In this document: positions 13,001 to 55,882 of the stretch, piece after piece
Layout of the letters: every line of letters starts with the position of its first letter
How positions within the stretch are numbered: position 1 is the stretch's first letter
Origin: Macrostomum lignano
Taxonomy: Eukaryota
Direction: 5' to 3'
Assembly: GCA_002269645.1 (NCBI GenBank)
Contig: NIVC01000774.1
Location: 63,387 to 127,386 of the forward strand
DNA: 64,000 bases
Program-made: the position numbers and the translations under genes
Notes under the pieces: generated by a model
Told to the model about the DNA's origin: nothing
The model's input: only the letters and a program-made list of their open reading frames with translations
Database searches by the model: none

Positions 13001-14461
13001 GAGTGCTACGGCGCCTACATCCACTGGGTGGACGAGGCGCTGGCGCTGACTGCCGACCTGCTGGCCGAGACTGGCGACTCCGAAGGCAGCGCCGAGGCGG
13101 CCAAACGCCGCACCGACTGGCTGGCCGAGCACCCCGTCTACAAGTCGCGTCTGGATTGGCAGTCCCTGAACGCCCAGCCAGATAAGGCCTTCTTCAAGAA
13201 GTTCAACCTGTGGACGGAGCGACGGGGCCGGATTATGGGCCAGCTGAGGAAGCAGCAGCTGAAGAGCCAGAAGAGGCAGCAGAAGCATTCGCTGGCTGAG
13301 GCGAATGTCGACAGCGGCGAAGCGTCCAGCGAGTTGCGCAAGACGCTCAAGGACTTCGCCGACGATTCGGACGCCCGTTTCGGCTCTTCAACGTCCTCGT
13401 CGTCGTCGTCCTCCGACGAGTCCTCGGCTGGAGGAGGCGCCAAGGAGGCCGAGCGAGGCAAGAAGAAGGCGCTGAAGAAGCGGAAGGAGCTGCAGCGGCT
13501 GAAGGCCTCTTCGGGCTCGTCGTCTGCCTCTGACTCGGATGACGAGTCTTCAGCGGAAAAGAAGCAAAAGAAGAAAGTAGAGGCTAAAAAGGAGGACAAG
13601 AAGTCGCAGGATAGCAGCAACTCAGATGATTCTGACAAGGGCAAGAAGTCAAAGAAAGACAAGAAGGACAAGAAGGACAAGAAGGACAAGAAGGACAAGA
13701 AGGACAAGAAGGATAAGAAGGACAAGGACAAGAAGGATAAGGACAAGAAGTCTTCGGAAAGTGGAAGCTCAGATGATGATGCCCAAAAAGAAAAGAAGCC
13801 TGAAAAGGATAAGGACAAGAAGGACAAGAAGGACAAGAAAGACAAGGAGGACAAGAAGGACAAGAAGGACAAGAAGGACAAGAAGGACAAGAAAGACAAG
13901 GAGGACAAGAAGGACAAGGAGGACAAGGACGACAAGAAGGACAAGGAGGACAAGGACGACAAGAAGGACAAGAAGGACAAGGACGACAAGAAGGACAAGA
14001 AGGACAAGAAGGATAAGAAGGACAAGGACAAGAAGGATAAGGACAAGAAGTCTTCGGAAAGTGGAAGCTCAGATGATGATGCCCAAAAAGAAAAGAAGCC
14101 TGAAAAGGATAAGGACAAGAAGGACAAGAAGGACAAGAAAGACAAGGAGGACAAGAAGGACAAGGACGACAAGGACGACAAGAAGGACAAGAAGGACAAG
14201 AAAGACAAGAAGAACAAGAAGGACAAGAAGGACAAGAAAGACAAGAAGGACAAGAAAGACAAGAAAGACAAGAAGGAAAAGAAAGACAAGAAGGACAAGA
14301 AGGGAAAGAAAGACAAGGATGACAAAGAGGACAAAGAGGACAAGGAGGACAAGAAGGACAAGAAGGACAAGAAGGACAAGAAGGACAAGAAAGACAAGGA
14401 AGACAAGAAATACAAGAAAAAGAAAAATAAGGCAAAAAAGAGTAAAAAGTCGGGTAGCAGT

Positions 14462-14504
<43 letters not shown>

Positions 14505-17500: not shown

Positions 17501-20500
17501 CGCCGGCAGAGATCTCCATGTATGCCGACGACATCGCCCTCCGCGCCCGCCACCGCAACAAGCTCGAGGCTCAACGCGCTGTGCAAAGAGCACTCGACAA
17601 CGTGGCCCGCTGGAGCAATGAGCACAAAATGGTCCTAAACCCAGACAAAAGCGAGGCCGCCTTTTTCTCCACGGACACCAGCGAAGCCGCCTGGTCCCCG
17701 GCTATCTCTATCGAAGGCCGGAACCTGCGGCACAATCCAACGCCTCGGCTGCTGGGCCTCACACTGGACCGCACTCTGAGTTTCCGCAGTCATCTGGAGC
17801 ACGTGTGCAATCGGACCACTTCCCGATGCCGTCTCCTCGCCTGCCTGGCCTCCAAGGAATGGGGATGGTCCAAAAAACTCCTGCTCCGCATTTACCGTGC
17901 CATGCAACTTAGCATCATTAACTTCGCTGCGCCGGCCTGGCACCCTTGGCTCTCTGAATCCGCGTTTCAACAGCTGGAGAGAGCGCAGAACGCAGCCCTT
18001 CGTATTGTCACAGGACAACACCGCACGACTCCGGTTGAGGCCCTTAGGCTGGAAGCTGGCATCTGCTCCGTCCGCACTGGTAGCAATGTTATATGCCTGA
18101 CGGCCTTCGAAAGAGCTCAGCGCCTCCCGGATTCTCACCCGTGCCGCATTGCCGCCACTGGAAACACAGCGCACAGGCTACGCAGGAACAGTTGGCGGAA
18201 CCACGTCACCGACCTGCTGCCACTCATTGCTAGCTCGGTCACGCCGCGCGCCATGATCTGCACTGCTCGTCCGCCGCCTTGGGACCCTTTCTCTACCGAC
18301 GTGCGTGTCGACATGGCGTTGCCGGAACCCGGTCCCGCGCGCACAGCCACGGCCATCGACACTATCCGCCACCTCCCAGGCCTGATCACCATCTACTGCG
18401 ACGGCTCGGCATCAGGCGGCACGACCAATGGCGGCGCCTCAGCCATCGTCACGACCGGTGACCCAGCCCACCCTATCATCCTGGCGACTCTTCAACAGCG
18501 CGGCGCGCCCTCCACATCCTCGTTCGAAGAGGAGCTTCGCGCCGCCTCTCTCGCCATCGGCTGGATCAACCAAGCTGCTCTCACCGCGGCTACCAACATC
18601 TGCTCAGACAGCCAATCTATGCTCCGCGCTCTGGCCAGCGGCAACCCCAGAATCAGATCTGCACTACCTACTGCATCTGCCGAAATCACCTGGCAGTGGG
18701 TTCCGGGCCACCAGAATATTCCTGGCAACGAGCTGGCCGACCAAGCAGCCAAAGAGGCCACCACGCTCGTGTCTCCCGCTAGTCAGATCAGCATCCACAG
18801 CGCCAAAAACGTCATCAGAAGATCCGTCCTCGATCCCCCGATACGCCACGAGCGCACCCGGCACGCGTACCGGCTTCTCAACCGTCAATTGGAAGAGGAC
18901 TCCATCACCAACCGTGCCGATGCGGTGCTTCTTGCGCGCTTACGCTCAGGTCACTGCACTCTTTTCAACGCGTATCGCAGCATTGTCGACCCGGCCGTCG
19001 ACCCAGCATGTCACCGCTGCGGCCATCCCTGCGATGACCTGGAACACTGGCTTGACTGCCCAGCTCTCGCCGGCACCAGGCTCCGCCTTCTTGGAGGACC
19101 CACGACAGACATCAGCAGCATTTCCGCCGACCCCCTCGGGTTGATAGCGCTGGCCAGACACTGCCCTTAGCTCTGCCTGGGCGCGTACCACCAAAACAAC
19201 AACAACAACAACAGCAGCAGCAGCAGCAGTAGCAGTAGCAGCAGTAGCAGCAGCTCTTCTTCCAGTAGTAGTTCGGAGGACGAGAAAGAGCACAAGACAC
19301 TGAAAGTTAAGAAACAGTTGAAGCGGAAAAAGAAGAGCCCCAAACCGGACAAGAAATCTGGAAGAAGCTTGTCGTGTTCAAGCGACGCCGCTGAAGGGAG
19401 CGCGACTGACAGCTCCGATGGTGAAGCGGCGAAAAGGTTTCGAACGATTGCTGCGGCGAAAGGAAGGGAGAGTGACCTCCTAAAACTGAAAGGTGAAATT
19501 CAACACAATTATAAGAGACAATTTATGTAAGAAAAAACTTAATATTCTTTCAATATTCGTATTTTTTCTGCACCAAAAACAGTCGTACTGGTCGGAGACT
19601 CTGGCGTCGGCAAGTCCAGCCTGATGACGCGGTTCGTCGAAGGCACTTTCCGGAACCAGATGTTCAGCACGGTGGGCGTTGACTTTTGCACCAAAAATCT
19701 TGAGGTGAACGGGCGGCAAGTGAGTCTGCAGATCTTGGACACCGCCGGGCAGGAAAGGTGAGGAGCTGCATGTACTGGCAACCTGCTGACCCTACCAGTT
19801 CGGTCCTCAATGCGATCCCAGACTCTTTAAGTTCGGTCCTCAATACGACCCCAGACTGTTTAGTTCGGTCCTCAAATACGACCCCAGACTCTTAGTTCGG
19901 TCCTCAATGCGATCCCAGACTATAGTTCGGTCCTCAATACGACCCCAGACTCTTAGTTCGGTCCTCAATGCGATCCCAGACTATAGTTCGGTCCTCAATT
20001 CGACCCCAGACTGTTTAGTTCGGTCCTCAATACGACCCGACTGTTTAGTTCGGTCCTCAATACGACGACGGACTATAGTTCCGTCCTCAATACGACCCCA
20101 GACTGTTTAGTTCGGTCCTCAATACGACCCCAGACTGTTTAGTTCGGTCCTCAATACGACCCCAGACTGTTTACAGTCGGGTCTTGAATATGACCTCAGA
20201 TTCATGTTGGGTGCTGAAATATCTCAAGCGGTTCGGCCATCAAATTTCATAAGTCTGGCCATCGATGCGATGCCTCTGACTGTTCGGTTTGGTCACTAAC
20301 GAACCCCGTCAGCAGACCTGCCTCGCACACACCGATCGCCGTGCAGGTTCCGCTTCCTGGGCCCCAGCTACTACCGCGGCGCCGACGCCGCCATGCTGGT
20401 GTTCGACTCCAGCAACCGATCCAGCTTCGACAGCTGCGCCCGCTGGCTTGACGAGCTCCGCCTGGCGGCTGACCGGCGGCTCACCATCATGCTGGTGGCC

Positions 20501-21810: not shown

Positions 21811-24800
21811 TTAGTTGACCAAGGCGGCTGGCGTCCGGCACAGAACTTCCGCCACCTCCTCCTTGGTGATCCAGATCGCTCCACTCTCTGATGACGACAT
21901 CGAACTGCTGGTTGTGACGGAGTCTGACAGAGTTGCTGGTGGCTGCTGCCGGTGAGGGGGGCTCGACTGCCGGACCTGAGAGGCTGCATTTGTAGGTGTT
22001 GACCGGCCCGCTGAACAACCTGGCTTTTGTGCAGTTGGCTTTTTCTGCTCAATCTGCTTTTGCTGTTGCTGATGTTGCTGATGTTGTTCTTGTTTTTTCT
22101 GAAGCTGCAACTGCTGCTCTTCCTTCTGCTTTTGTTGTTGCTTCTGCTTTATAAGCAATGTTTGCTGCTGCTGCGGCTGGACGTGCTGTTGCTTTTTTTG
22201 TTGGTGGTCTGGTGGCACTTGTTGCGGTTGCTGCTTTTGCGGTTGTTGCGGTTGTGGCTGTTGCTGCTTTTGCGGTTGTTGCGGTTGTGGCTGTTGCTGC
22301 TTTTGTAGCTGTTGTTGCTGTGGCTGTTGCTGTTGTTGTGGCTGTTGTTGCTTTTGTGGCTGTTGCTGTTGCTGTTGCTGCTTTTGCGGTTGTTGCGGTT
22401 GTGGCTGTTGCTGCTTTTGTAGCTGCTGTTGCTGTGGCTGTTGCTGCTTTTGTGGCTGTTGTTGCTTTTGTAGCTGTTGTTGTTGCTGTTGTTGTGGCTT
22501 TTGTTGCTTTTGTGGCTGTTGCTGCTTTTGCGGTTGTTGCGGTTGTGGCTGTTGCTGCTTTTCTAGCTGTTGTTGCTGTGGCTGTTGCTGCTTTTGTGGC
22601 TGTTGTTGCTTTTGTAGCTGTTGTTGTTGCTGTTGTTGTGGCTGTTGTTGCTTTTGTGGCTGTTGCTGTTGCTGTTGCTGCCTTTGCGGTTGTGGCTGTT
22701 GCTGCTTTTGTGGCTGTTGCTGTTGCTGCTTTTGCGGTTGTTGCGGTTGTGGCTGTTGTTGCTTTTGTGGCTGTTGTTGCTGTGGCTGTTGCTGTTGTTG
22801 CTTTTGTAGCTGTTGTTGTGGCTGTTGCTGCTTTTGTGGCTGTTGTTGTTCTGTCTGTTGCTGTTTCTGGTTTTGCAATGGTTTTTGCAGCAGTTGCCGC
22901 TGCTGGGGCTTTTGCATTTGTTGCTGCTGCTGTTGAGTCAGCTGTTTCACCGGCAGCGCACGCTTCTGCGTCATCTGCGTCTGCGCTTGCGCCTGGCTGC
23001 CGATGCTGGTGATTCCTCCACCCAGCCTGGCCACGGCTGACTTGTTCAACCGCACGTTGGTGGCGTTCGCCCGGCGAATCGACTGCGGCTGGCGAACTGC
23101 GTTGGCAAATCAAGGTCGGGGATGGGGATTGGTTAACAGTCACTGGCAGCCTACCAGTTATGAGTAGTGCAGCTTACAGTTATGAGTAGTGCAGCCTACC
23201 AGTTATGAGTAGTGCAGCCTACCAGTTATGAGTAGTGCAGCCTACCAGTTATGAGTAGTGCAGCCTACCAGTTATGAGTAGTGCAGCCTACCAGTTATGA
23301 GTAGTGCAGCCTACCAGTTATGAGTAGTGCAGCCTACCAGTTATGAGTAGTGCAGCCTACCAGTTATGAGTAGTGCAGCCTACCAGTTATGAGTAGTGCA
23401 GCCTACCAGTTATGAGTAGTGCAGCCTACCAGTTATGAGTAGTGCAGCCTACCAGTTATGAGTAGTGCAGCCTACCAGTTATGAGTAGTGCAGCCTACCA
23501 GTTATGAGTAGTGCAGCCTACCAGTTATGAGTAGTGCAGCCTACCAGTTATGAGTAGTGCAGCCTACCAGTTATGAGTAGTGCAGCCTACCAGTTATGAG
23601 TAGTGCAGCCTACCAGTTATGAGTAGTGCAGCCTACCAGTTATGAGTAGTGCAGCCTACCAGTTATGAGTAGTGCAGCCTACCAGTTATGAGTAGTGCAG
23701 CCTACCAGTAGTCAGGAATTTAAATACTCTGTACATTGTGTTGGCTCTGTTCGGGCGTGAATCTCCCAACAAGACCCAGACAAAAATTTCCCTGCATTAA
23801 ACCGAAATTAATCTGGCCGCGCACACAGAATCAAACTCGAGTAACAACTCGAATTTTGGTGCGAGAGACAGACTGCGGCACTCAAAGCATTTGCTCACCG
23901 GGCGAACCGCTGATGCTGGACACGCGGCCTCTGCCAGCGCTGCCGCCGCGGCCGCCGCCTCCGCCAATGAGTTTCCTCGGCGGGCCCGGCGCCCCGTCAA
24001 CCGACTTCGGACGCTTAACGATGCGCGCCCGGCCGACGCCAGCCGCTGAAGATGCCGACGGCGCTGGTGGCGAGTCCAGCCGGGAGGAGCTCACATCTTC
24101 AATGTCGGCGCTGACATCGTCCTCGTCGCAGATGGTGGAGCCGGCCTCCGAGTCGCCGCCGCCGCCGCCGCTAGATATAGTCAGGTTGAAGGTGATCGGC
24201 GACTGCTGCCGATGAATTGAGGCCGAGGCCGATGTTGAAGAAGCCGATGACGTCACCTGAAGAGTGAACCGCTGTGCCGGGCTGCCGTCCAGACTGCCGG
24301 CCGGGGAGGCATCCGAATAACCGGAGTCTTTCGAGCGGCGGCCGGCGCTGATGGAGGTCGATGAAGGCGCAGGCGGGGCTGACCTGACCGGGGTCGGTGC
24401 GACAATGCCAAGCGGCTTTCCGGCACCGCTCAGCATCGGCTGCTGCTGCTGCTGTTGCCTTAGGACAGAAGATGAAGGCGGAGTCAGCTTTGATGATGGC
24501 GCAGCAATAGAGGAGGCCGAGCTGGACGGCTTTGCCGGAGTGGAAGCCATCACAGGCGTTGGAATTGTGCTGGGCTTGGAGCTGGCGCCGGCCTGAGGCC
24601 GCACAGTCGAAGCCGGCATGGGCAGCCTGGAGGAGGCGGTGCCGCTGGCTATAGCGGACGGACTCACGGGCACCCAGGATGTGCCGGCCACGATGGGCTT
24701 GGGCGCGGGCAGCTGAGAAACCGCTGGCACGTGGCGCACCGAAGCAATCGGCACAGGCGACGGTGCCGCCGGCGGCTTGACCTGGCCGAACAGAGCGCCT

Positions 24801-27800
24801 GTGGCGTCTCCATCGTCCTCGTCGTCGGTGAGGTCCAAGTCTGTGTCCGTGTCCTGCGACGCGTCAACCTCGGCCGTCAGCTCTGCGTTAGTCGCCGATG
24901 CGTGCGGACTCTCCCGAATAGCGGCGGCGTCAATCTCCATGGAGGAGCCGCTGAGGTCGCTGGTGTCAATATCCGACAGCTCCAGCGTGAGCTGCCCGGC
25001 GGCCGGCTCCTCGTCGCTGTGGATGCTGAAGGTGCGGCTGTCAACTGGACGTCCGGGCGCGTCGGCGCTTGTTCGACTGCCGCCGCTGCTGCTCTGTCTG
25101 TCGGCGTCGCGTAGTTCAACAGGCGACGGCGAGCTTCGCTCCTCCGTCAGGGTGTACAGCCGCCTGTCAGTGCCGGCGTGGAGCCTGCAGGCCAGGCGGT
25201 GGTGCTGATGGACCAGGTGGATCTTGCTGCTGCTGCTGCTGCTGCCGGGGGCGGGTTGACGCGGCGGCGCCGGCGGCGGCAGCCGATGCTGATGGCGGGC
25301 CGCCCCGGTTAACGACGCTTGGGTTTTCGGTTTCGACGGCCCCGCCTCGCTGCTGGCCGACTCCGCTAGCGGCTGTTGCTGCTGCTGCGGCCGTTGCTTT
25401 CTTCCGTCGAAACCTATCCAGAAAAAAGACGCCTTGCTGTTGCTGCTCGCGCTGCTGTCGCCGCCCTCGCCATTGGAATCGATGGCTGGCCTCGCACGGG
25501 CGGCCGCTAACTGCTGCTGCTGTTTCTTTGGCATAGCAGAAGAAATGCAGGCTTCAAGCAGTTGGTCGGCGTTGTCGCTTGAGCAGCTGGATGACCGGCT
25601 GGAGGTCTGCGCCGATGTCCGGTAGGAAAAGTGGGCCGGCGTGTCCTCGGTTTTGTAGGTGACCTGCGGGTCAGGCGTTGAAATTCTTTTCTATCTACCT
25701 ACAATCACTGACAACTGAGTGTATGAATGAGAGCTGCAGCAGTGCTTTTAAAATTAACCTGCCTGTAAGATCTCATCGGATTATTTATAACATTCCTTAT
25801 GAAATCTCTGGTATATATGTCTTCTTTGTGAGAACTCATAGGAATGTTGCTAATGTTCCTTGTGAGATCTTATAAGAATCTTGCTAATCTTCCTTGTGAA
25901 ATCTCATAGCAATGCTACCAATTCTACTTGTGAGATCTCATAGCAATGCTACTAATCTTCCTTGTGAGATCTCATAGCAATGCTACTCATCTTCCTTGTG
26001 AGATCTCATAAATGCTACCAATCTTCCTTGTGAGCCCTCATAGCAATGCTACTCATCTTCCTTGTGAGATCTTATAAGAATCTTGCTAATCTTCCTTGTG
26101 AAATCTCATAGCAATGCTACCAATCCTCCTTGTGAGCCCTCATAGCAATGCTACTAATCTTCCTTGTGAGCCCTCATAGCAATGCTACTAATCTTCCTTG
26201 TGAGATCTCATAAATGCTACCAATCTTCCTTGTGAGATCTCATAGCAATGCTACTAATCTTCCTTGTGAGATCTCATAGCAATGCTACTAATCTTCCTTG
26301 TGAGCCCTCATAGCAATGCTACTAATCTTCCTTGTGAGATCTCATAAATGCTACCAATCTTCCTTGTGAGATCTCATAGCAATGCTACCAATCTTCCTTG
26401 TGAGATCTCATAGCAATGCTACTAATCTTCCTTGTGAGATCTCATAGCAATGCTACTAATCTTCCTTGTGAGATCTCATAAATGCTACCAATCTTCCTTG
26501 TGAGATCTCATAGCAATGCTACCAATCTTCCTTGTGAGATCTCATTGAAATGCTGAAAGATGCTCGCGCCCACTCCACTATCAAGCAGACACTCACCGTC
26601 TTCTCATCGCACTGAACGCCAACAGCACCGCGAGTGGAGCGACCGGCCACAGCAGCTCCGACGCCGGACTGTACAGGTCCGATGTCCTCTTCATCGTCTT
26701 CCTCGTGGATGACATTGCCAGCCACCTCGTGCTCGTCCAGCTCGTCCTCCTCGTCCTCGATGCCCAAGCCGATGTCTATGGCCTCCTCTTCATCCTCCTC
26801 GTCCTCAATGGCCAGCGCTGCTGCCACTTCGTCCACTTCGTCGTCGTCATCGTCGCGCTCTTCGACACCCCTAGCTAAACCGAGAGACAGCGCTGGCGCC
26901 GACTGCTGCTGCTGCTGCTGCTGCTGTTGCTGTGCCGGAGCGCCGTCAGCGGCGCCGTAGTTCAAATCGACACTAGACGGCGGAGACGGAGTGTGCTCAA
27001 CGTGGAACACAGTTGGCCGGTCGTCAGTCACAGTTGTGATGGTTTTAGCCGCGGCATGGGCTCTGGATGGCGGCATGCCGCTGCGAATGCAGTCCTGCAG
27101 GATCTGCGAGTCCAGACCGTCGTCTTCGTCTTTTGACGAGGAGGAAGCGGCTGAGGAAGCCTTGCTGGCGCTGCCTGGTCGGCGATGCCGCCCTGCGGCT
27201 CCAGGAATTTGTTGGGGCTGCGTTGAACGTTGAACTGTCCGCGTCTGCGGTTGCTGCTGTTGCTGCTGTGTGTGTGTGTGTGTGTGTCTTCGGCTGGGCG
27301 GGTTCCCTCATTGCACCCACTCAGGGTGCGTGCACTTCAGGAACCCTAGCACCTTCGCTTCATCTCCCAGATCCTCCAGACCTTGAATACCAAAACGCGC
27401 CCTCTCCTTATGCCACCTGTCGCACCACACCCAGTGGTCCTTGTCCTCTTCCTCACCGCAGTCCTGACAACTCGCCTTTGCCTCAGCACCGATTTTTTGT
27501 CGCCAGTAGGCCGTCTTCTTGCATTGACCACATCTGAGTTGGGCGAGTGTGGTCTCCGTGCTACGATTTTCAGCGCATTTGTTAATTTTGTGCTTGTAGA
27601 CCCTACGGAGACGCTCATCAGAGGGCGGGGGCGCCGGCTCCTTCCTGATGGCCGCCTTTACACAGTTCCACATGACGGGGACGTCGTCCTGCGGTAGAGC
27701 CGCTGCTTCCTTAGCCTCCTGGTCGACATCCTCGTTGCCCGCGACACCAACATGACCGGGTACCCACTGCAGCACCACTCTGGTAACTTGGCTAATCTCA

Positions 27801-30800
27801 CGGAGTCTACTGATCAGGCGGTACGACGTGGTATCCTGGGTAGCTTTCTCGCTGCTGAGCTTGAGGAGGGCCGATTTACAGTCCGTCAGGATGATGGCAT
27901 TTCGCGGCTTGGCCTCCGCAATGGTATCCAGTGCCAGCTCCAGGGCTCGCTCCTCCGCAACCAGGGAGCTGCACCACTCCCCGGCCGCCGCTTTCTTGAC
28001 GCGTCTCTCCGTGTCAAAGTACACGACACAAGCTGCACCACCCTTACGCTGCCCTTCTCCAACAGACCCATCCGTGTAGATTGACAAATCGAATTTGCCC
28101 CAGGCGTTAATGGTGTCGATCGTCTCTGTGGCGAGGTTGCTGTCACCCTTCTTTCCTCCGCGAATAAGCTCCGTAGCGATCACGACGCCGTCCATATGTA
28201 GCCGTCTCCACGGCGGGTGTCTCTTTCTGGTGAAGCCCTCTCTGGGGTGGGTCGACCTCCTCAGGCATTCCTCTCTGGCCTGATCCCTCCACCCTTTGTT
28301 CGCCTGAAGTCTGCGGTTTCCGGTTCTTTCACTACACTCCCTGAGCGGGTCTCCCTCTGGGGCTCTGGTGGCCTTTTCCCAGGCCAGCATCGCCCTTTTG
28401 CGCGCTTGATAACGGATCGGCTCGATATTAGTCTCCACGTACACCGCTTCAATGGGGGTGGAACGCACCAGTCCCGCAGCTAGACGGAGACATTCTCTCT
28501 GAGCACGTTCGAGTTTTTCAAAGCTAGTGCTGGACAGCCAGGGGAGCCACGCTGGGGCGCAGTACCAGATACAACTCTCAACAATACTTTTGTAGATCAA
28601 CAGGAGTTCCTCGTCCTCCAGCCCCAGCTGGTATTAGCCAGGACACGGATAGCTCTAACTCTGCGTTTCATTTTGTTTAGCACGGCCTCCGTATGAGCCG
28701 CGAACGTTAAGCCGCCATCGATGGTGATACCCAGGTATTTAAGTTTCCTCACAGTGGCGATAGTGCGGCCGGCGATCGTGAGTCCCGTGACAGCAGACTT
28801 GTCCTTAGGAGATCTACTAAAAATACAACATTCGCATTTGGTTGGATTTAGCTCTATCTTCAGCACTTTGGCCCACCTCTCGATCTTAATCAGCGCTCTC
28901 TGGATGGTATCTCTGACCTCCGAGTACACGGTACCAGAGGCCCAGATGGCGAGGTCGTCGGCGAAGCCGCCATATTCCACGCCCTGCTCGGTGAGGCCGT
29001 TCCAGCCGTTAGCGTAAAGGAGGAATAACGCTGGGGAGCTCACCGCTCCTTGCGGCAGTCCCTCCTGGAAGCGTCTGAATTTGCTGGTCTCATCGCCCAC
29101 GCGCACTCTGCCTTTGCGGTCCTCCAGGAAGCTGGCGAACCACTTAACGAGGTGCGCTGGGACTTTTTCTTCCAGCATTCTATCCATCAATTTGACCCGC
29201 CACACTCTCTCGTATGCTTTGGAGCAGTCCAGGGTGACGGCAACGGTCTTGAGCGGGCGGCGCTCCTCCCAGCCATCCTGGATGGATTGCACTAACCGGA
29301 TCACTTGCTCTTCAGTGCTGCGGCCTCTTTGGAAGCCCGCCTGCCAACTTTTGATGATCTTGTTGTCTTCCATCCAAAAGTACAGCCGATTAGTGACCAT
29401 CCGCTCCATCAGCTTCGCACACACCGGGGTGAGGCTGATAGGGCGATACGACTCACGCTGCTTCGGATCTTTGCCGGCTTTGAGCAGTGGTATGATCTCG
29501 GCTTTCTTCCAGATCCCGGGGCACGAGTGCTCCGCCCAACTGCGGTTGAAGATGTCGAGCCAGCGATCTAAGCACTGTTCGGGCAAGTTCTTAAGGAACC
29601 GTACCTCAATACCGTCGACGCCACCTTTTTTGTCTGCAGCCATCTGGTCAAGTGCGTCTTTGAGTTCTTCGCGGGTGAACGGGGTGCTGAATTCAGCGCC
29701 CTCGTTGTACGTCCTTAGTTTCTTGGCGACCTCAGCTCTTAACGCCCGCTCTTCTTTACCCAGCTGGACTTTGCTGTTTGATGCATACAAATTAATGAAG
29801 ACCGCCGCTTTTTCCTTGTCGGTTCTAGCTTCTCGTCCTTCGTTGACCACGATCTCGTTAGGGACACAGTCCTCCTTAACCGCGTGCAGGGTCTTGATCA
29901 GCCTCCATGTGCTTTTGCCGTCATCTCCTTCTTGCAGCTTACTCACGTGCTCTCTCCAGAAGGCGGAACGTTTCTCTTTGATGAGATTGCTAAGGGTTTC
30001 GTTAGCGCTGTGCCACCGCGCTCTACTATCAGAGTTTTCTCTACTTTCCTTATCACTGCTGTTGTTGCTGCTGTTGTTGAACCAACTGAGGCTGTGGAGG
30101 CTGCATGGGCTCAGATGGCGTGTCCGGCAGGTAGCTGGGCGAGAGCGGCGGCCCGGCGGAGCGGCCGCCAGTGCCGGCGCTGTAGGAGCTGGCGCGGGAC
30201 GAGCGCAGCGAATCGAGGCCGACGCTGTCCAAGGAGTGGCCAGACGAGCCCCGGCTGAACACCAACGGCGTCGGCTGCACGGAGCCGCCGGGCGCCGAGG
30301 CGGATGCGGAAGCAGCTGGCGTGGCCGCAGTCGATTCGGCCACTGCTGCTGCTGCAGTGACAGATGCACTGGCGCCGGCGCAGCCATCCGTGCCGTCCTG
30401 CCCGCCAGCAACAGAGCCGGCAAGGCGGACGCACTGCGGCAGGGTCAGCTCCGACTGGCCGGACGAATTGTAGTGCACGGAGGCCGATAGCGGCTGCTGG
30501 CCGGATCGGTCATGGGTCACGTCGGACACGGCGCTGCGCAGGCTTTCCTGGCTGGCCGAGCGCTGCGGACTGCACAGAAGTGGCCGGGGCGACGAGCTTG
30601 GTGTTCCCGCTGCCTTCCCAGATGCCGACGCCGGAGCTGCCGATGCCGTTGCTGTCGCCGACTGGCGTCCGGCATGCTGACTGCTGCTGCTACTGAGGCT
30701 TCGGCTGCCGGCGCTATTGTTGCTGCTGCAGCCAGTGCCGGCGCCAGTGTGGGGCGGCGGCAGCTCAGCCGAATCGTGCAGCCTGGCTGAGACCAAATTC

Positions 30801-33476
30801 TTCAGGGCGCTGGCGCTGGCCAGGCGAATCACCTGGTGGAGTTGGCGATGTTGCATTGGAGATGCATTGCAGTGGGCTAGATTAGCAATCCATTACATCC
30901 CACTATATGCGGGATAGATTAGCAATCCATTACATCCCACTATATGCGGGATAGATTAGCAATCCATTACATCCCATTGTCTCTGGGATAGATTAGCAAT
31001 CCATTACATCCCACTATATACGGGATAGATTAGCAATCCATTACATCCCACTGTCTATGGGCTAGATTAGCAATCCATTAGATCCCATTGTCTCTGGGCT
31101 AGATTAGCAATCCAATACATCCCACTATTTACGGGCTAGATTAGCAATCCATTACATCCCACTATTTACGGGCTAGATTAGCAATCCCTTACATCCCACT
31201 ATTTACGGGCTAGATTAGCAATCCCTTACATCCCACTATTTACGGGCTAGATTAGCAATCCCTTACATCCCACTATTTACGGGCTAGATTAGCAATCCAT
31301 TACATCCCACTATTTACGGGCTAGATTAGCAATCCCTTACATCCCACTATTTACGGGCTAGATTAGCAATCCCTTACATCCCACTATTTACGGGCTAGAT
31401 TAGCAATCCCTTACATCCCACTATTTACGGGCTAGATTAGCAATCCCTTACATCCCACTATTTACGGGCTAGATTAGCAATCCCTTACATCCCACTATTT
31501 ACGGGCTAGATTAGCAATCCCTTACATCCCACTATATGCTATTAGGCATGCATAGACGCTATCAAATCACCTTGTGCTTAGACTGAATGAGACAGCGCAG
31601 CATTGGCACGGCGCCAAGGCGGGTCAGCAGTCTCTGATCGGCCAGATGATTAGAAGACAGATTCCACAGAATGCCGCAGGCGTTAGCAACCACAGTTAAA
31701 GAGGCTGAGCGCAGCTGGGTGAGCAGAACAGGAAAAGCAGGCCTAACAGCTGAGCGGAGATCCTCGCGCACGGCCACAACCGAGCTGATGTTGCGCAACA
31801 CGCCGCCGCCAGTCTCGGCCAGGCTGGGGTTGCAGGTGAGACAGGCGCACAGCAGGCTGAGAGAGCCGGGCACAGCGCAGATGGCCTCCTTGTTGGCTGT
31901 GGAGTGGGCCGACAGGTTCCACAGGGCCGACAGCAGGCTGCGAAGGGTGGTCTCTCGCCTAACCTGGAGAGAGAGTGCAAGAATAATAAGGCAAAGTAGA
32001 TGATTAAGAATAAAAGGAGAGAAGAAAAAGGAAAATAAGACAAGGTCGAAAGAGGAAGAAGAAGAGGAAGAAGTAGAGGAAGAAGAAGAAGAATAATAAT
32101 AATAAGAAGAAGAAGAAGGAGAAGAAGAAGAAGAAGAAGAAGAAGGAGAAACAGAAGAAGAAATAGAAGAAGAAAAAGAAGAACTGCTAACTCTTACAGG
32201 TCACAGTTCAATTCGCAATACAACAGCATATATATGCATAGAGACAACCAACCTGAAGCGCCGCTCTCGTCAGTACACCGGCCGCGCCAAGCCGGCCAAG
32301 AACGGCCCGACACTCGGCGTCCGCCTGCCAGCTAAGATTTCTAATAACGGCGGCGGTCACCTGGCAGAGCTCCTCCTCAACCGGTTGGGCAACGCCGACG
32401 GCTAATCCGGGCGGCGATTTCAGCTGTTCAACGAGCGACCAGACGGCCGGCGCCCGGAGGCAAACGCGACGCTTGCAGGCGGCATCGCCGTAGCTCAAGT
32501 TAGTGAGAGCGCTGGCGGCGTAGCGGCGCAGAAATAGGCTGCATGGCGGCGGCCGGTACTGGGTGCGGCAGAAGTCGACAAGCAGCAGGTCGGACAGGCA
32601 CTCAACTCCGCCCAATTCAGCTATGGCTGGTCGGTCAGTGTCCGAGTAGGACAGTTCAAGCAGCACGGACAGGGCGCTGCAGCAGCGGTCGCGCAGGGCG
32701 TCAACGGCAACTTCGGCAGGTGGAGGAGACGACAAGGAGGCCAGCTGGCCGCAGCGGCACAGCACAGCACGGACGGCATCGCAGTAGGCGCGCACCTGGT
32801 CCAGGTGGCACAGGATGAGCTTCTCCTTGGCGCCAGCCTCCGGACAAGCGGCCAGATTAGCCAGTATTTGAGCTGCCCGGTCTCGCACTGGCCTGGGCGG
32901 CAGGCTAGCGTGCGGGCTCGGACAGCGGGACTCCGGACAGGGGTCGCGGGTCTCCGGGCCGTACAGCAGCGGCAGCACGAGCCCAAACGGCTGGCCCTGG
33001 CGAAGGCGGCTGCAGTCCACGGGATCGGTGGACATCCGCAGCAGCGCCTGGCTGAGTTGATCCGGATCGTCGGCCGGAGCGCCGCCGGCGCCGTCAAGAG
33101 AATCGAGATCGTCTAAATCGGCGAGGGCGCACGTTGAAGTGACGGTTGACTCGTCCAGATGCTGCTGCCGCTGGCTCCGCTGTTGCTGCTGTTGGCGCCG
33201 GTGCTGCCCAGTCCGGGAGCCGGCAAGGCTGGCCGCGGGACTGGCCGGGCTGTTCAGCGGCGGCGGCTGGGCGATGCCGGCAGAGGCTGCGGCGGCTGCC
33301 GACGACTCGTCGGCGGCGTAGACGCTGGCCAGCCAGGCGGACAGTTGAGCAGATGCTCGAGAGGCGGACGCGGCTGCAGTTGCTGACGTAGCTGTCGCTC
33401 GGCCATGATGGCGCTGCTGCTGCTGCTGCTGGTGCTGGTGTTGTTGCGATTGCACAGGAGCGGCAGTGATTGGCAT
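21811..33476 (-). CDS. APC: Adenomatous polyposis coli protein (~2038 aa reconstructed); this allele is interrupted by a LINE
   Basis: Exons 33476-32253, 31963-31571, 30832-30056 + 27268-26597 (LINE between), 25663-23899, 23096-21811; all GT-AG and phase-compatible. ARM region closely matches APC (LRRYAASALTNLSYGD; VIRNLSWQAD; LQ|VRRETTLRSLLSALWNLSAH; GGGVLRNISS; ACGILWNLS; IQSKHK|VIRLASASALKNL). 20-aa repeats QPTPLVFSRGSSGHSLDS and YKTEDTPAHFS; region-B-like SPSYLPDTP; SAMP motifs ILQDCIRSGMP and LLEACISSAMPKK. Confidence 0.93.
22050..22920 (-). repeat. Coding Gln-rich repeat (PQKQQQ / QQQPQ)n in the last APC exon
   Basis: The Q-rich frame (ORF 21811-23055) is the one joined in phase 1 to the upstream APC exon (SGSP|VRQPQSIRRANATNVRLNKS). 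Confidence 0.8.
23146..23709. repeat. Near-perfect 23-bp minisatellite CTACCAGTTATGAGTAGTGCAGC (~24 copies) in the last APC intron
   Basis: Read directly; copies are identical apart from the first. Confidence 0.97.
25790..26544. repeat. 34/32-bp minisatellite CTTCCTTGTGAGATCTCATAGCAATGCTACTAAT in an APC intron
   Basis: Read directly; degenerate at the left end, homogeneous at the right. Confidence 0.93.
27269..30055 (-). mobile_element. 5'-truncated Ingi-like LINE (RT + RNase H + CCHC) inserted in the APC poly-Gln tract
   Basis: 5' junction CAA CAG CAG|TGA TAA GGA; 3' end ...GAAG-(AC)10 tail|CAG CAG CAA CAG. Begins in the APE-RT linker. Different family from the 14503 element (different tail, diverged protein). 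Confidence 0.92.
27308..30055 (-). pseudogene. LINE ORF fragment: RT (YRPISLTPVCAKLMERM, GLPQGA, FADD), RNase H (IYTDGS, TDCKS, WVPGHVGVAGNEDVD), CQDC..H..C; one frameshift at ~28615
   Basis: ORFs 28597-30423 and 27308-28600 join into WGWRDEELLLIYKS if one G is added at 28615-28616. This gives the same spacing as WGWSKKLLLRIY in the other LINE. Confidence 0.88.
30872..31535. repeat. 37-bp minisatellite GGGCTAGATTAGCAATCCCTTACATCCCACTATTTAC in an APC intron
   Basis: Read directly, ~18 copies. Confidence 0.95.
32050..32182. repeat. (GAA)n-rich purine tract in an APC intron (pyrimidine tract on the coding strand)
   Basis: Read directly. Confidence 0.85.
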
Positions 33477-36400
33477 TGCCTGGGCCTGGAGAGCTCGCAG
33501 CCTATATGGGGGGGGGATTAAGATGGGTGTTACTTTTTATCAACTTATCTACTATTAGTAGGAATAATAGAACAGTATATACCAAGTTTGAGAATATTTG
33601 CTAAGCCTCGAGAGCCGCAGGCGCGTATAGCTTCTCAAGATCAGGGGTTAAATTTATATTTATGCATTAATTTTCGCGTTGAAGGTGTTGAATATCTAAT
33701 AAACTGTCATGATTTTAATCTCTATGGCTTAGGGTTCTGATAACGAATCAAAGTGTTATAGTTAATTCAGTTACCAATGCCCCTCTTGACCATGGCAGGA
33801 AAATGACCAGCCAATACAGTGGTAAATTGAGTGGCAAATTCAGAGAGCAGCTCCGAAGACCTAAGCTGTGATAAAGGCAGCGGTAGAGAGGAAATTGACT
33901 TTAGAAACTGAAGGCGAAGCTGTAGAAAAATAATAACGGCTACTGGGATGAAAGAGCTGGGCAGGCAGGCAAATGAGGGCGGTTTAGTTATCCCACGGCT
34001 ATGCAGAAGAAATCGATGGGATCTTACTACAGCCGCGCAGTTATATATAAAGTTGAAGCTATTTTGTGAATAGGCCGCATAGCAGCTTAGTAAGTAGCAA
34101 GGCTATGCAGGCTACGCTATCCAACATTAGCAATCACTCTGCGCAGCTAAAAGGTGAATGCCCAGCACATATAAATACTGACGGGGCGATTCTCATTTAG
34201 AAGCGTCTCAGTTCGCTTAAACGAGGATTTTAAATGACAGGGATTGGCGGCAAGCCCAGCGTGGGCGCGCACAGACTGATGAGTCATTCAAACAAGCGCT
34301 ATTTGCCATTTTTTGCCTTAAACTGCACAGCAGGAGTCGGCGCGCGTGCGTTCGAGTGTATTTTTTTCCCACTGGTGTCTTGCCTGGACGGGGGAATCAA
34401 AGAAGAGAATTAATTGAAGCGGGCCGGCATACCATAAGGTTCGGTAGATAAAATGCCGCTTTATCAATAGATTTTCCGTGTGCTCGTTTCGCTCTATCCG
34501 CCGTGATGCATTAAGAAGCAACAGCAACACCCCTTGCCAATTGCCAAATAGATGCACTACTGGACTACTGGGCGCACAAACCAACAACAACAACAACAGA
34601 AGGAAACTGTTGCAAACTGATGAAAATGGTTGCCCCCCCCCTCAGTTTACAATTTGCAAAAAAGCAACACGATGCCGGATTGAGGCAAGAGTGCCCGGGC
34701 GTGTCGTCTGGACAGGACTGTGACAGCTGAATTGGACGAAAATGATTAAGCAGTTTGCTTGCATTTTCCCCTTCCAGTCCAATGTGTTTTTTTCTTTTCA
34801 ATTCCTCTTCGCCCGGAACACACTGGCCAATTAATCAGTGTCGTTAGTGCGCGAAAGTGATCAGCTGGGTAATTGGCCCTGGCCCGAATAGAGACCAAGC
34901 GAGTGGGCGTATTGAGTTACGCAGCGCGGTACGCAGAAGCAACTGTGTGTGTTTTTTTGCAGACTTGAGCGGCACTGAATTGAACAATTGGCTCTGGCAA
35001 GAGAAAGCAAACAGACTGGCTTCCAAAGCATTGATTTGATGCCAATGCTAGTTCTAGTTAGTGCATATAGTTAGTTGCAAATAAATTCGCCTTCCGGATC
35101 CAAGCTCATCACAATGGCACTAACAAGGCCTTTCAGTGCAGCACGGCGCTAAAAAAGTGCCTCAGCTGCCGTAGAAAACCGATTATCTCATTTCTGGCAT
35201 CGGAGAGAATTATTGTCCCCATTGTGTTTTCATAGGAAGCCTAGCAACTGCACGCTTCCGTTCAATGCTGTGTGAGCGCATTTTATACATTATTTCTCCC
35301 ATTCACAGTGAGCTGTGATGCGAACCAAGCCTGGGAGATGATTGGATATTAAGGAGAGGCAAAGCAAGCGGGGAAGCTTGTTGATGGCATTGCGAGATAG
35401 GAGCAAAGGGTTGGAGAGACTCAATAGCGAACAAGTCAATCTCATTAAGCCAAATAATGAAGCTAAATATAATATATGGTTGCCAAGAGGATACTGGGGG
35501 AGTACGTATTGAATAAAATATTAATTGTAGATTCTAACCAACGATGACGAAGCTGTGAACTGCTCGTGATTTAAACTTTCTCAGGCTCCCCTGGGCGGAA
35601 GTTCGCACCACCATATTGCGGAAAAGAGCATTGGTGAATTATATTTTAACAAAAATCTGACCTGACCAGCGGAACACAACTTTGTATTAGTGCAGCAGAG
35701 TTGGCTTTCACAAGGGCAGCTGTGTATTGCTAATGATTTAATCGCTACAGTCAATATTCACTTTAATATCCAAAGCTTTGCCGCCTGTGCTAATATGCAT
35801 GCAACTGATCAGTATCAAAAAGCAGCGGTCGGATGCGAACAATTGAAGCAAACAGAAAAACACAACGGTCAAGAGTTGTCAGTAAAAGCAGTAGATTGGT
35901 ATCTAAATAACATTTTACAGTTTTATAAAAGTGCACTGTGCCATCCAAAAAAGTCTATCAATTGATTTGCCCTGCTCTTATATGATTAACACAATTAGTC
36001 AGTATAGAGTATGTAGCTATGTGTAATTAGTGCTGCTAGACATTGTGGCCCTGTTACCACAGCCCCAGCCAGGGAAACTACAGCTCAGCGAAATAGACTG
36101 GTATGGATATGGGAATTTAAAAAAAGACAGCCAAACTCGGTCCATGCAAACGAGATGCGGAAGGGAAAGCGTGGTGGCTCATTTCTGGGTTCAGCAGTCG
36201 CCGTGGGAATTGGGTTAGATGAGAGCAGGGCGAGGGAATGAGAGTGGGGGGGTAAGAGGGAAAACACTAGCAGCATGAGCAGGCTTTGGGAGGGGGAGGG
36301 CGGCGGTTGAAGAAGGCGAATAAAGCGGGGACTCTGCGTCTGCAGGCTCCCCCCCCCATGCCGAAATCCCCACACGGCGTCGCCTCGGCCGCAGCAGCAG

Positions 36401-39176: not shown

Positions 39177-42100
39177 GCGTCGAAAGAATTGCAGAAGATG
39201 GTAGATAGTAGATATAATAACAGAACTAATAGGCGACGACAGTGGAGAAATCTAAGAACTATTAGACGGCAATAGTGCACTACTAATGCAGCAGGAATAC
39301 AGACAACAGATGTCAGGCGGAAGACAGTAGTAAGAATCAGTGAAGTACAACAAAGCCATACGGAATGCAGGATTAGAACAGTTGATGGTGATAAAAAAAT
39401 GGCGCGCCAGCAGAGGGAGGAGTAGAAAAAATGATGTAGGAAAAGTGGAGAAAAGGCCAGCCGATGCTTTATGGCCCTTTAAGCCAGGTCAGTCGGACTG
39501 CGCATGGCCTGCTCCTGTCTGCCATGCAACGCAAGCTTGTCGTGCGCACACACGGACAGACAGAGAGAAGGCGTAGCCCACGCAGCAGCGACCGTCAGGA
39601 GCCGCAGACAGACTAAAAGTGAAGAAGCGAAGAAGATCGCAAATAAGAGGGGGGGGGGATCAGGGGAGTTGGAGAGCACAGAGAGGCAGCTATGCACATG
39701 GGATCGGTGATTCTACTAAGACATTGAAAAAAAATTGCCAGTTATAATGCTACCACGTACGCACTGAGCGTAGTGCAGCTGAACCGTTGCTAAAATTATA
39801 TTACTTTAGTAAGCCAACTGGGGTAGTCATAAATATTGTTGCCAGGTTGTTAATCCATACCGCACTACCGGTATTTTACAATCTTCAGCTAAGCTGAACA
39901 ACAATGGCAAAGATTTTTTCATCCAACGAGCTTCTTAATAGCTTCGAGTGCGATACATTATTAGCAGGCTGATTGACACCTGCTGATGGAGTGAAATATA
40001 TTTGGTGACCTGAGACGCAATCAATTGATGTCAATGCGAAGCTTAAAAGCATTTTTATTATAGACCATGATGAAAACAAAGCCAACCCTTATCAAAACGG
40101 AGAGCCTTGAAATACTCTATTGCTAGGAGCGCTAGCATCTGGATCAAACAAGCTCAATAGACCAAGAAACGAACATTCCTCCGCACTCACTTGTCAGCGC
40201 CTCATTATGCAGAGATCGCTGTGATTTATGCGCCCAGCCTACTGACAGCAATAAGAAATTGAAACGCGCAGCAGAATTGGCCTCGACGTTGCGGAATCGC
40301 GGCAGTAAAAACAGGATGAGGAAGAGGAGGGGAACGGGAAAGGCGAAAGAACAGCAGAGTCGAGTGGGGAGAGAGTTATCAAATACGGAGCTGAAAAAGC
40401 ACGCCGGGAGAAAATAGTATTGAAAGGGAGGGAGGATTGAGGAGAGAGGGTGGAGCGAGAGAAAAGGAGGAAGGGAAGGAGTGAGCGCGAGCATAGCAAG
40501 CGCAGGGCGATGCATATATGGGATTTCTTGGCCCGATGCCAAAAAATGCTCGACAGGCAGACCGGATAAGCGCATTGAATTCTAGCATTTAGTGTGGCAG
40601 AGAAGCTGCAGCAGATTACAGATAGCTACTCACTTTAGTTGAGCACCGTCTCCAAACGGAATAAACAGTTAGATGTCAATTAGAATACGCGGAACCGATA
40701 TGTTTATCAGTAAACAATGACCTTAGTGTTCAGTATAAGCAGTTTGCATCACAGACTTGTGCCAACCTCTGTCGCGGCTGCTTTACATAAATGAATTTTT
40801 AAAGTGTCAGAAGCCGCAGGTTTTTTAATTGTGTAAATCTAACTAACGAGTTTCGAGATCCGCTCAATTCCGCAAAGAAACGTTAATGCCGAGAGAAGAC
40901 AGTCAAGCCAGCTGTTGCACGTGTTAAGAAGCGCACAGTAGAGGACGCAGATTTAACACAATAAATAGACAGGGCAGTACTATTATTGCAGTGGGTTAGC
41001 AGGGCGCAGTAGCCTTACGCTACGCTTTATAAGCGCCCTTATATGCGCTATCTCATTCGGAATGGGAAGGCACCAAGAGAGTCTGTTCTTCCTGACTGGC
41101 TGCGGGGTGGAGACCAGGCGAATGCACAGGCCCCGGGATTGGGCGAATCGCCTGGACTGAGCAAGTAGAAGCTGGGAGAGAGAACTGGGAGAGGGCGGGA
41201 GGGGGAGAGAAATTCACAGGAGAGAATTCAGGCCAGAATGGCCAAAATTAGCCAGAGCGGAATGCCCCGAAGCGAAGAAGCCAATGACGATATGCCGGGA
41301 GAGTCTAAAAATAGCCTTCGGATTTAGTGGACTATATGCACTGTGGTGGCCCCTGTAGCCACTGACTGGGAGGGGGAATTCCAAAGCAGCACGAAATAAC
41401 AAGCTGATTTTAATCGGATTGAATCTTTAAGATTCGTGAAAGAAATCGGAATTACAGTGCCTAGTTACGGGGACGATCTCATGCACACTATAGCGCAGGA
41501 CTATCCTGATTATCCCTCTGTGACTTTGTGAGGAAGGTACTCACTCAGGGTGTAGGTTTGCAGATTAGATTTTCTAATACATAAGATAGAGTACAATGCC
41601 TTTCAGGACACTGTCTATTAGCAACATTTTTCGACGCACAAAAGACAGCAAGAAACCGCTTGTTTCACATAGCGACTATACATCCTATGCAGCAAGCGGG
41701 AGGCGAGTAGTTCAAACAAGGACACGGTTGAGCATCTAACACTAACACGCCCATTAGCTGATAGTCCATTCACTGGCTTTCCCCATGTTTTACCTGCTAA
41801 AACGATGCCATTACCGCAAGAATAGCATAAGATGCTTCATAAATCCCAATACAGGTCCCGAACAGAACCGTAGAAAGGCACGAACTTTTGCAGAAAGGAC
41901 TCAAATTTCTTAATAAATAATTCACAGCTCAAGCTCAACTATTGCGCAGCTTATTAGATTTATAATTCTAATGCACAACCCATATCAAATCCATGTTTGT
42001 GAAGATAAAAAAACAGCAAAACGAACCAGTGTTTTAGGTTGCTATGCGTAGTTGCCATGCAATCCATAATTTGCACTTTGTATTTTATGAATATATTATT

Positions 42101-52753: not shown

Positions 52754-53148
52754 CCTTCTTGCAGCGAGCGCATAGCCGAATTCCTATCGAATCCCTGCCA
52801 GCCAGTCTGCTCCTCTGCAGCCGCTCCGTCGTCATAGTAATCCAATTGGCTGTCGAACGGAGCCGCACAGAGCGCCGCACCGGCCGACGCGGGCTGCTCA
52901 AAGATGTCGTCTTCCCAGATGTAGCCGTCGTCGTCATCGCGTCGACGATCCTGACACTCGCTGGCGTCGCCGGGGAAGCCGACAACGCCGATCCCAGTTC
53001 GCTGGCGCAGCTCGTCGAATACCAGCGGCGACATTCGACGCCAGGGCAGGCAGGCGAATTCGTCTTCATCATCGTCGTCATGGAAACCGCCGATGCTTCC
53101 TCCTCCGGTTGCCATTCCAGATTGAGAGTCACTATAGGCCCCTGGCAA
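52754..53148 (-). CDS. Putative coding exon of an unidentified gene with an acidic N-terminus (MATGGGSIGGFHDDDDEDEFACLPWRR...GYIWEDDIFEQ...)
   Basis: GC-rich open frame bounded by acceptor CTGCAG (AG 53150-53149) and donor GG|GTAAGC (GT 53-52 at 52753-52752); ATG at 53115. No downstream partner exon identified, no recognisable domain. Confidence 0.5.
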
Positions 53149-55749: not shown

Positions 55750-55882
55750 TGATTTGATGCGCGTTCTAATTGGCTGAAATGCAACATGATACAATAATCA
55801 ACATTTAAACATTAGCAGTAATACACATGGTGCAGCTCACAGGAATTTCTATTGGTGCAGATATTAACTTTACTAATGTCGA

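Follow-up and report, generated by a model that had tools for sequence, protein, structure and literature searches.

A LINE insertion predicted to truncate one of three APC copies in the genome of the flatworm Macrostomum lignano

Somatic insertions of L1, a long interspersed nuclear element (LINE), into exon 16 of human APC have been described in colorectal cancer, at codon 1526 by Miki et al. 1992 and at codon 1396 by Scott et al. 2016, and in the latter study, with a target-site duplication (TSD) of 14 bp, the L1-inserted APC alleles were found to be expressed (PMC4889970). In the flatworm Macrostomum lignano line DV1 a LINE is likewise found in a coding exon of an APC orthologue, encoded on the minus strand of a stretch of 64,000 bp (positions 63,387 to 127,386 of contig NIVC01000774.1, assembly Mlig_3_7, GCA_002269645.1). 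This whole stretch was analysed and is referred to as the window; the record coordinate is the window coordinate + 63,386 and contig and window are 100% identical across 43 kb.

The genome of DV1 is known to consist of three subgenomes, S, L1 and L2, in karyotypes SSL1L2 or SSL1L1L2L2, that is 4–6 chromosomal copies per worm, with a divergence of ~2% by single-nucleotide polymorphisms (SNPs) and of ~36% when indel length is counted, the differences being mainly insertions and deletions (PMC10733133). Three copies of the APC gene were compared, the one in the window and those on NIVC01004510.1 (L001) and NIVC01001558.1 (L003), two contigs of the same assembly that are both collinear with the window. 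The copies are equidistant, with ~1.3% SNPs in each pair, which matches the published S, L1 and L2 subgenomes; being equidistant at that level, they give no basis for telling which of them is S, L1 or L2. The locus is best explained as a real, recent and dead-on-arrival LINE insertion truncating one of three subgenomic APC copies, most likely a buffered null in the course of post-polyploidy decay, a reading to which a probability of about three in four is given.

The inserted LINE and its empty sites

An earlier sequence-only reading of the window had placed a LINE within a coding exon of an APC orthologue and both parts of this proposal were borne out by database searches (armadillo E=1.8e-74, RVT_1 E=5e-35, RNase_H E=2e-14). 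The insert and its borders consist of the following features.

27270..30062, minus strand: LINE insert of 2,793 bp, 5'-truncated and in the same orientation as APC, beginning ACAGCAGTGATAAGG and ending (AC)9, missing from L001 and L003 at exactly this point
30063..30074, minus strand: 5' copy of the TSD, ACAGCAGCAACA, 12 bp, from filled against empty site (L001)
30050..30055, minus strand: premature stops TGA TAA in the APC frame, from ...AGT GAT AAG... (S D K) of the LINE frame
28597..30054, minus strand: LINE reading-frame segment with reverse transcriptase, Pfam RVT_1 E=5.2e-35
27308..28600, minus strand: LINE reading-frame segment with RNase H and a C-terminal Cys/His motif, Pfam RNase_H E=1.8e-14
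27270..27287, minus strand: (AC)9 microsatellite tail, 3' end of the LINE
27258..27269, minus strand: 3' copy of the TSD, ACAGCAGCAACA, 12 bp, from filled against empty site
Junction 1, APC into LINE: ...CAGCAGCAACAACAGCAGTGATAAGGAAAGTAG
Junction 2, LINE into APC: ...CCGAAGACACACACACACACACACAGCAGCAACAGCAGCAACCG

The APC frame ...SPSYLPDTPSEPMQPPQPQLVQQQQQQQQ (LVQ8, 30085-30056, minus strand) runs straight into TGA TAA at 30055-30050 and is picked up again at 27268 with QQQQQQPQTRT..., in agreement with the earlier description of stops directly after LVQQQQQQQQ and of a clean resumption of the frame. When filled and empty sites were compared on the paralogous scaffolds, as had also been proposed, L001 and L003 were both found to be empty. 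They read uninterrupted GGTTCAACAACAGCAGCAACAGCAGCAACCGCAG across the insertion site and carry ACAGCAGCAACA once each, against twice in the window, and the flanks of the LINE are 99.6–100% identical to the empty site on both sides. Since L001 and L003 carry the uninterrupted site the filled-site pattern is not a matter of chance, and the suggestion that another copy is intact holds at the insertion site.

Both forms are also seen in models of the ML2 assembly, where the evidence is at the protein level, the contigs for these models not being on record. A0A1I8JA23 (P0002) represents the filled form, running from APC into the LINE and back into APC over both junctions, and A0A1I8J120 (P0001; n=2) represents the empty one.

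The insert combines a reverse transcriptase of the non-long-terminal-repeat (non-LTR) type and the domains typical of its family with a TSD, an empty site, 5' truncation and a complete 3' end (its own stop codon, a short 3' untranslated region and (AC)9), as expected for target-primed reverse transcription. The TSD lies in a CAG/CAA tract and can alternatively be read as 16 bp with a 3-bp slip, the insert then starting at TGATAAGG; read as 12 bp or as 16 bp alike, it is the signature of target-primed reverse transcription and not of a mis-join.

When aligned with P0123, a 1,446-aa relative with endonuclease, reverse transcriptase and RNase H to which it is 48% identical, the LINE starts at ~residue 545, so that the N-terminal third including the endonuclease is missing and the element cannot move on its own. 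The RNase H segment is offset by one base from the reverse transcriptase segment through a frameshift near 28600-28620, across which the alignment with P0123 continues. The best database relatives are proteins of 1,250–1,450 aa with the domain order Exo_endo_phos, RVT_1, RNase_H, and the element is compared at group level with RNase H-bearing, I/Ingi/Nimb-like retrotransposons. No relative from M. lignano appeared in the protein search (best match 48% identical) and blastn against the window and the paralogous loci found only the LINE itself; as no sister copies were found, the age of the insertion is read from the empty sites and the intact flanks only. Neither AATAAA nor ATTAAA is present in the sense strand of the insert, and premature polyadenylation inside the LINE was for this reason not adopted as a mechanism.

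A second, apparently full-length LINE is situated on the plus strand at ~14260-19196, ~2.6 kb past the 3' end of APC, and has a 1,462-aa open frame (open reading frame 14782-19170) with endonuclease, reverse transcriptase and RNase H as well as a (CAA)n-like tail. It is missing from the paralogous contig L003, and its protein is only ~32% identical to that of the APC insert, so that the two LINEs are of different families.

The APC gene and its predicted truncated product

Six coding exons of the APC orthologue were rebuilt, with GT-AG borders throughout, and with the LINE taken out the exons in the window amount to 2,167 codons with zero internal stops. The exons and the motifs they encode are given below (exon borders within sequences are marked by a slash; 20R stands for 20-aa repeat).

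52754..53115, minus strand: coding exon 1, aa 1-~121; 100% identity in tblastn of PAA76982.1 (P0121), donor GAAGG/GTAAGC
32253..33501, minus strand: exon 2, N-terminal region and start of the armadillo domain; the match to the human APC armadillo structure (3nmz) spans exons 2–4
31571..31963, minus strand: exon 3, armadillo repeats, Pfam Arm E=1.5e-9; 100% identical in L001 and L003
26597..30832, minus strand: exon 4 (interrupted), whole extent including the LINE
30063..30832, minus strand: exon 4, 5' part, with the armadillo end, a Ser/Ala-rich linker, a 20R2-like motif, a B-like motif and a polyglutamine run
30274-30221, minus strand: 20R2-like motif PTPLVFSRGSSGHSLDSV, exon 4 5' part; Pfam APC_r 13 bits (sub-threshold), aligns to human 20R2 in 1TH1_C, E=6e-4
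~30145-30095, minus strand: B-like motif LSPSYLPDTPSEPMQPP, exon 4 5' part; from the alignment to human 20R2 and B, 1TH1 chain C, E=6e-4
26597..27269, minus strand: exon 4, 3' part, with a SAMP1-like motif, a 20R-like motif and an acidic tract; in frame from 27268, 100% identical to L001 and L003
27103-27071, minus strand: SAMP1-like motif ILQDCIRSGMP, exon 4 3' part; 10.8 bits, E=0.32, sub-threshold
27025-26972, minus strand: 20R-like motif DDRPTVFHVEHTPSPPSS (DDRPTVFHVEH...), exon 4 3' part; no Pfam match
23899..25663, minus strand: exon 5, 20-aa repeat, SAMP2 and a Ser/Pro-rich tail
25651-25598, minus strand: 20-aa repeat TEDTPAHFSYRTSAQTSS (TEDTPAHFSY...), exon 5; Pfam APC_r 22.9 bits, cut-off 19.9
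25561-25529, minus strand: SAMP2 LLEACISSAMP, exon 5; Pfam SAMP 30.8 bits, cut-off 19.6
21811..23096, minus strand: exon 6, Q/P/K-rich repetitive C-terminus and normal stop; the C-terminus of P0001 maps here and the frame is open until the stop at 21811

The assignment to APC was made from the armadillo domain, which in a phmmer search of PDB matched structures of human APC (3nmz E=1.8e-74, 3au3 E=8.6e-70; query residues 265–685), together with a SAMP motif and a 20-aa beta-catenin-binding repeat, one of each passing in Pfam. In the database search the closest proteins outside Macrostomum were vertebrate and arthropod APC/APC2, with ~40% identity across the armadillo region. Pfam APC_rep reached 18.8 bits, under its cut-off of 27, and the segment with the 20-aa repeat and SAMP2 gave no PDB match at E<=10, the Pfam result being used instead. 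By its Pfam score SAMP2 is a candidate Axin RGS-binding motif. The 15-aa repeats, N-terminal coiled coil, basic domain and EB1-binding domain gave no Pfam match at E<=0.1 in a 1,615-aa model without the first 129 residues, and they are also unlisted for the Macrostomum proteins while the vertebrate matches carry them. Such vertebrate-type features are missing in some invertebrate APCs too, and their absence does therefore not exclude membership of the family.

For the truncated product the sequence-only reading had given 798 aa, starting from the ATG at 33476. This ATG is internal and the first coding exon, at 53115-52754 and 19 kb upstream, had been missed; the predicted product is 927 aa and is already deposited as PAA76982.1 (BOX15_Mlig014094g1, "hypothetical protein"), which ends LVQQQQQQQQ. 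Retained in the fragment are the armadillo domain and a single 20R2/B-like module; lost are both SAMP motifs, the other 20-aa repeats (the 20R-like motif at 27025-26972 and the repeat at 25651-25598) and the C-terminal 1,240 residues, and two exons (25663-23899 and 23096-21811) and two introns lie downstream of the premature stop. The two SAMP strings had been placed correctly to the base (27071-27103 and 25529-25561) and both lie downstream of the stop, but only SAMP2 passes the Pfam cut-off (30.8 against 19.6 bits) while SAMP1 stays at 10.8 bits. In the same way, of the armadillo repeats, one 20-aa repeat and region-B-like motif that had been described in the retained part, the last two do align to human 20R2 and B (E=6e-4), but the 20-aa-repeat-like motif scores a sub-threshold 13 bits.

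In this alignment the retained VQPTPLVFSRGSSGHSLDSV...LSPSYLPDTPSEPMQPP is paired with VQETPLMFSRCTSVSSLDSF...ISPSDLPDSPGQTMPP of human APC in PDB 1TH1 chain C, a stretch which we take to be repeat 20R2 and the adjacent B (catenin-inhibitory) region. The premature stop aligns to ~residue 81 of that chain, corresponding to ~codon 1440 in human APC, a position that is approximate as the alignment is of low complexity there. For the human numbering the anchor was F1396, the residue at which ...SSLDSF ends and at which Scott et al. put the L1 insertion (PMC4889970). A stop near codon 1440 belongs to the mutation cluster region of human APC, with the published L1 insertions on either side (codons 1396 and 1526) and the R1450* hotspot ~10 codons away, so that the tumour-type position claimed earlier is supported by the alignment. 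As in tumour-type alleles the stop lies past the armadillo domain and the early 20-aa repeats and ahead of the first SAMP; it does not lie in the last exon, two exons following it, and the wild-type copies are not lost, two others having the empty site. Judged on sequence, the architectural analogy with human tumour truncations is good, the predicted product retaining the armadillo domain and 20R2/B but none of the SAMP motifs.

The exons of APC are 99.2–100% identical between the copies, with only 2 amino-acid differences in the first 917 residues. The L001 contig stops in the intron after exon 4, and the ML2 empty-site model, which is in frame through exon 5 into exon 6 and differs from the window and L003 in exon 6, may represent an L001-type copy. 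Loss of the other APC copies was looked for and not found, there being two empty-site copies and an ML2 model reading through exons 4–6.

Both ML2-based UniProt models are misannotated and skip part of exon 4: A0A1I8JA23, a chimeric APC-LINE-APC model, is named 'RNase H domain-containing protein' and A0A1I8J120 is named 'Armadillo repeat-containing protein 5'. The former was considered as evidence for a fusion protein and was treated as a gene-prediction artefact, as its introns have to change the frame and parts of both genes are left out of it. A literature search found no paper on M. lignano APC and none naming Mlig014094 or Mlig012377.

Several other features of the locus were observed. 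The last exon (21811-23096, minus strand) encodes ~400 residues of Q/P/K-rich imperfect repeats (QQQPQKQQQ...) with a 9-bp length difference between copies, and its opposite strand and other frames yield long spurious open reading frames. The introns flanking the interrupted exon (30873-31535 and 25820-26554) are filled with minisatellites, with units of ~37 bp and ~34 bp in ~18–20 copies each, whose copy number and sequence vary among the three gene copies. At intron 3 (31571/31570, 30833/30832) a hexamer is shared between the donor and the start of the exon that follows the acceptor, AAG/GTGATT...CAG/GTGATT, which may be a coincidence or a trace of intron origin. The 19-kb first intron contains further presence/absence differences of kb scale among the copies (L003 22090-27474 against window ~40059-40072; window 44490-45171 and 49703-50200), consistent with indels dominating the subgenome divergence. 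The neighbouring genes are a cytochrome b561-domain gene upstream (~54613-55773, minus strand), annotated upstream of APC in L001 and L003 too, and an Arf/Ras-type small GTPase gene downstream (<=20641, plus strand).

Interpretation and alternative explanations

In the explanation favoured here, a non-LTR retrotransposon of an endonuclease, reverse transcriptase and RNase H family with a (CA)n tail has entered exon 4 by target-primed reverse transcription, dead on arrival with its N-terminal third missing and one frameshift. Lying in sense orientation, the element places TGA TAA in the APC frame with its first bases, so that the annotated product is a 927-aa N-terminal fragment. As the other two copies keep the empty site, the insertion postdates the divergence of the three (~1.3% SNPs), and as all other exons of the window copy are still open and 99–100% identical to the paralogues, it is young, too recent for further decay of this copy to have followed. 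Having lost the SAMP motifs, the fragment could presumably no longer be tied by them into the Axin destruction complex, which would make the copy null for beta-catenin destruction. With two exon junctions downstream and no AATAAA in the insert, a read-through mRNA would be a likely target of nonsense-mediated decay. The remaining copies, within a total of 4–6 chromosomal copies per worm, would buffer the loss, and such buffering suggests ordinary decay of a redundant gene copy rather than selection of a tumour-type allele. The window copy is unlikely to have a phenotypic or dominant effect.

A number of points weigh against this explanation. The transcript-guided annotation gave the locus in the window its own transcript cluster, Mlig014094 rather than Mlig012377, which hints at a distinct transcript reading into the LINE that could make protein, and in humans, APC alleles with a truncation at the corresponding position are expressed without being neutral. 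The two assemblies, ML2 and Mlig_3_7, were built from the same PacBio reads and are not fully independent, so that their concordance is one of two assemblers and not of two data sets, and 3-bp slippage in the CAG/CAA tract can blur the exact length of the TSD. In exon 5 of L003, at ~39494 (= window 25247), GCCCCGG is found where the window has GCCCCCGG, a 1-bp change from C5 to C4 by which the frame is shifted past SAMP2, so that the annotated 1,316-aa PAA66432.1 of L003 ends in an aberrant tail. This looks like a long-read homopolymer error or could be a real second disabled copy, and if it is real the redundancy is thinner than three copies. Finally, that the window copy is transcribed, that its mRNA undergoes nonsense-mediated decay and that no stable fragment results are all steps that we infer.

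The alternative that survives best, though still unlikely, is that transcripts of the filled copy are made, are spared from decay and yield a stable 927-aa fragment lacking SAMP, acting as a hypomorph or a dominant negative that shifts the output of Wnt/beta-catenin signalling, in line with the hypomorphic or dominant allele of the earlier reading. Its architecture would be that of human truncations in the mutation cluster region, with a stop near human codon 1440 (PMC4889970), and the transcript-guided annotation does end the coding sequence at the LINE-derived stop under a cluster name of its own. The 2.8 kb of LINE and two introns after the stop nevertheless make decay likely, the human truncations lying in the last exon, and the window copy is one of three subgenomic copies of which the other two have the empty site. 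DV1 is moreover in standard laboratory use, and its worms are healthy and regenerate. The earlier reading had referred to planarians; in the regeneration of M. lignano beta-catenin plays another role than in planarians according to a 2025 study, as it is cited in 10.64898/2026.07.29.741434, and a planarian APC phenotype does accordingly not transfer directly.

A second alternative, in which the LINE acts as a new intron that cryptic splice sites remove in frame so that near-normal APC is still made, is regarded as very unlikely. The insert is flanked by 19 in-frame GT...AG pairs and its 2.8 kb is within the size range of the introns of the gene. Upstream of the stop, the donor TCA/GTTGGT at 30086 resembles CAG/GTTGGT of exon 2 and the donor GCA/GTGATA at 30056 resembles AAG/GTGATT of exon 3. 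The candidate donors are nonetheless weak when compared with the GTRAGT consensus and the in-frame acceptors they pair with have no clear pyrimidine tract, and the donors in exon sequence, at 30086 and 30082, are present in the empty copies too, where the annotated models read straight through them. The transcript-based annotation stops the coding sequence at the TGA, with no splice over the LINE, and the sole read-through model, A0A1I8JA23, uses invented frame-changing introns and retains LINE protein sequence. Rescue through the strong GTGAGT donors in the insert was also considered and rejected, as both are downstream of the stop and cannot restore the frame.

For truncated human APC, dominant effects on the function of spindle and kinetochore or on the set-point of Wnt signalling have been reported. 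By analogy DV1 might express a stable N-terminal APC fragment without SAMP that acts dominantly in the same manner, an idea given slightly less credence still than splicing of the LINE; if true, it would contribute to the known tendency of DV1 to gain extra large-chromosome copies, lines such as NL10 being more stable in karyotype.

Least probable of all is an assembly artefact, a mistaken join of some read or contig with a LINE to the APC locus. In its favour, the genome is triplicated and very rich in repeats, 36% of the length of Mlig_3_7 is reported to be chimeric between subgenomes (PMC10733133) and PacBio-type homopolymer errors are probably present nearby. Against it, a mis-join would not give a precise 12-bp TSD around a 5'-truncated element with its own 3' tail and flanks 99.6–100% identical to the empty site, and the same junctions were obtained by two assemblers, in ML2 and in the Canu-based Mlig_3_7.

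Significance and comparison with described systems

Taking the favoured explanation of a buffered LINE insertion, the reference genome of M. lignano DV1 holds one APC copy that is structurally a cancer-type truncation and is annotated only as "hypothetical protein", and studies of APC and Wnt in this species by RNA interference, CRISPR or expression must distinguish three copies. The locus would offer a clean case, open to dating, in which a retrotransposon knocked out one homeologue of a dosage-sensitive signalling gene shortly after the genome had been duplicated, and a germline echo of the L1-into-APC events in human colon cancer. It is one instance of the decay of redundant copies by transposable elements that is expected in a neopolyploid and reveals no new mechanism by itself.

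When compared with the published divergence of S, L1 and L2 in this neopolyploid (PMC10733133), the locus shows the same pattern of three equidistant copies with ~1.3% SNPs and mostly large-indel differences, the window alone holding several large indels including the second LINE at ~14260-19196 that is absent from L003. What sets it apart is an indel within a protein-coding exon of a central signalling gene, gene-level cases not being described in the published study. Among the RNase H-bearing non-LTR retrotransposons (I/Ingi/Nimb-like groups) the inserted element is placed by the order Exo_endo_phos, RVT_1, RNase_H of its relatives and by a microsatellite tail in place of poly(A), whereas the nearest database proteins share no more than 48% identity with it and all come from species other than M. 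lignano.

Human truncations in the mutation cluster region, such as R1450*, resemble the predicted product in that the armadillo domain and a 20R2/B-like module are kept while all Axin-binding SAMP motifs and the C-terminus are lost. In the flatworm protein, unlike human APC, neither 15-aa repeats nor an N-terminal coiled coil, a basic domain or an EB1-binding domain could be detected, the fragment retains no more than a single weak 20R, and the dosage is 4–6 copies in the flatworm against 2.

A close parallel is formed by the L1 insertions into human APC. In both species a 5'-truncated LINE with a TSD (14 bp in Scott et al., 12 bp in the flatworm) is found in the large exon with the 20-aa repeats, the protein ends at or within the insert, past the armadillo domain and ahead of the SAMP motifs, and the insertion of Miki et al. 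is also in sense orientation. The flatworm insertion is germline and resident in the assembly whereas the human ones are somatic and selected in tumours, and its element has RNase H and a (CA)n tail where L1 has a poly(A) tail. The flatworm exon is furthermore not the last one, which makes decay plausible, while the human alleles are expressed, and no second hit is evident in the flatworm, where two subgenomic copies have kept the empty site.

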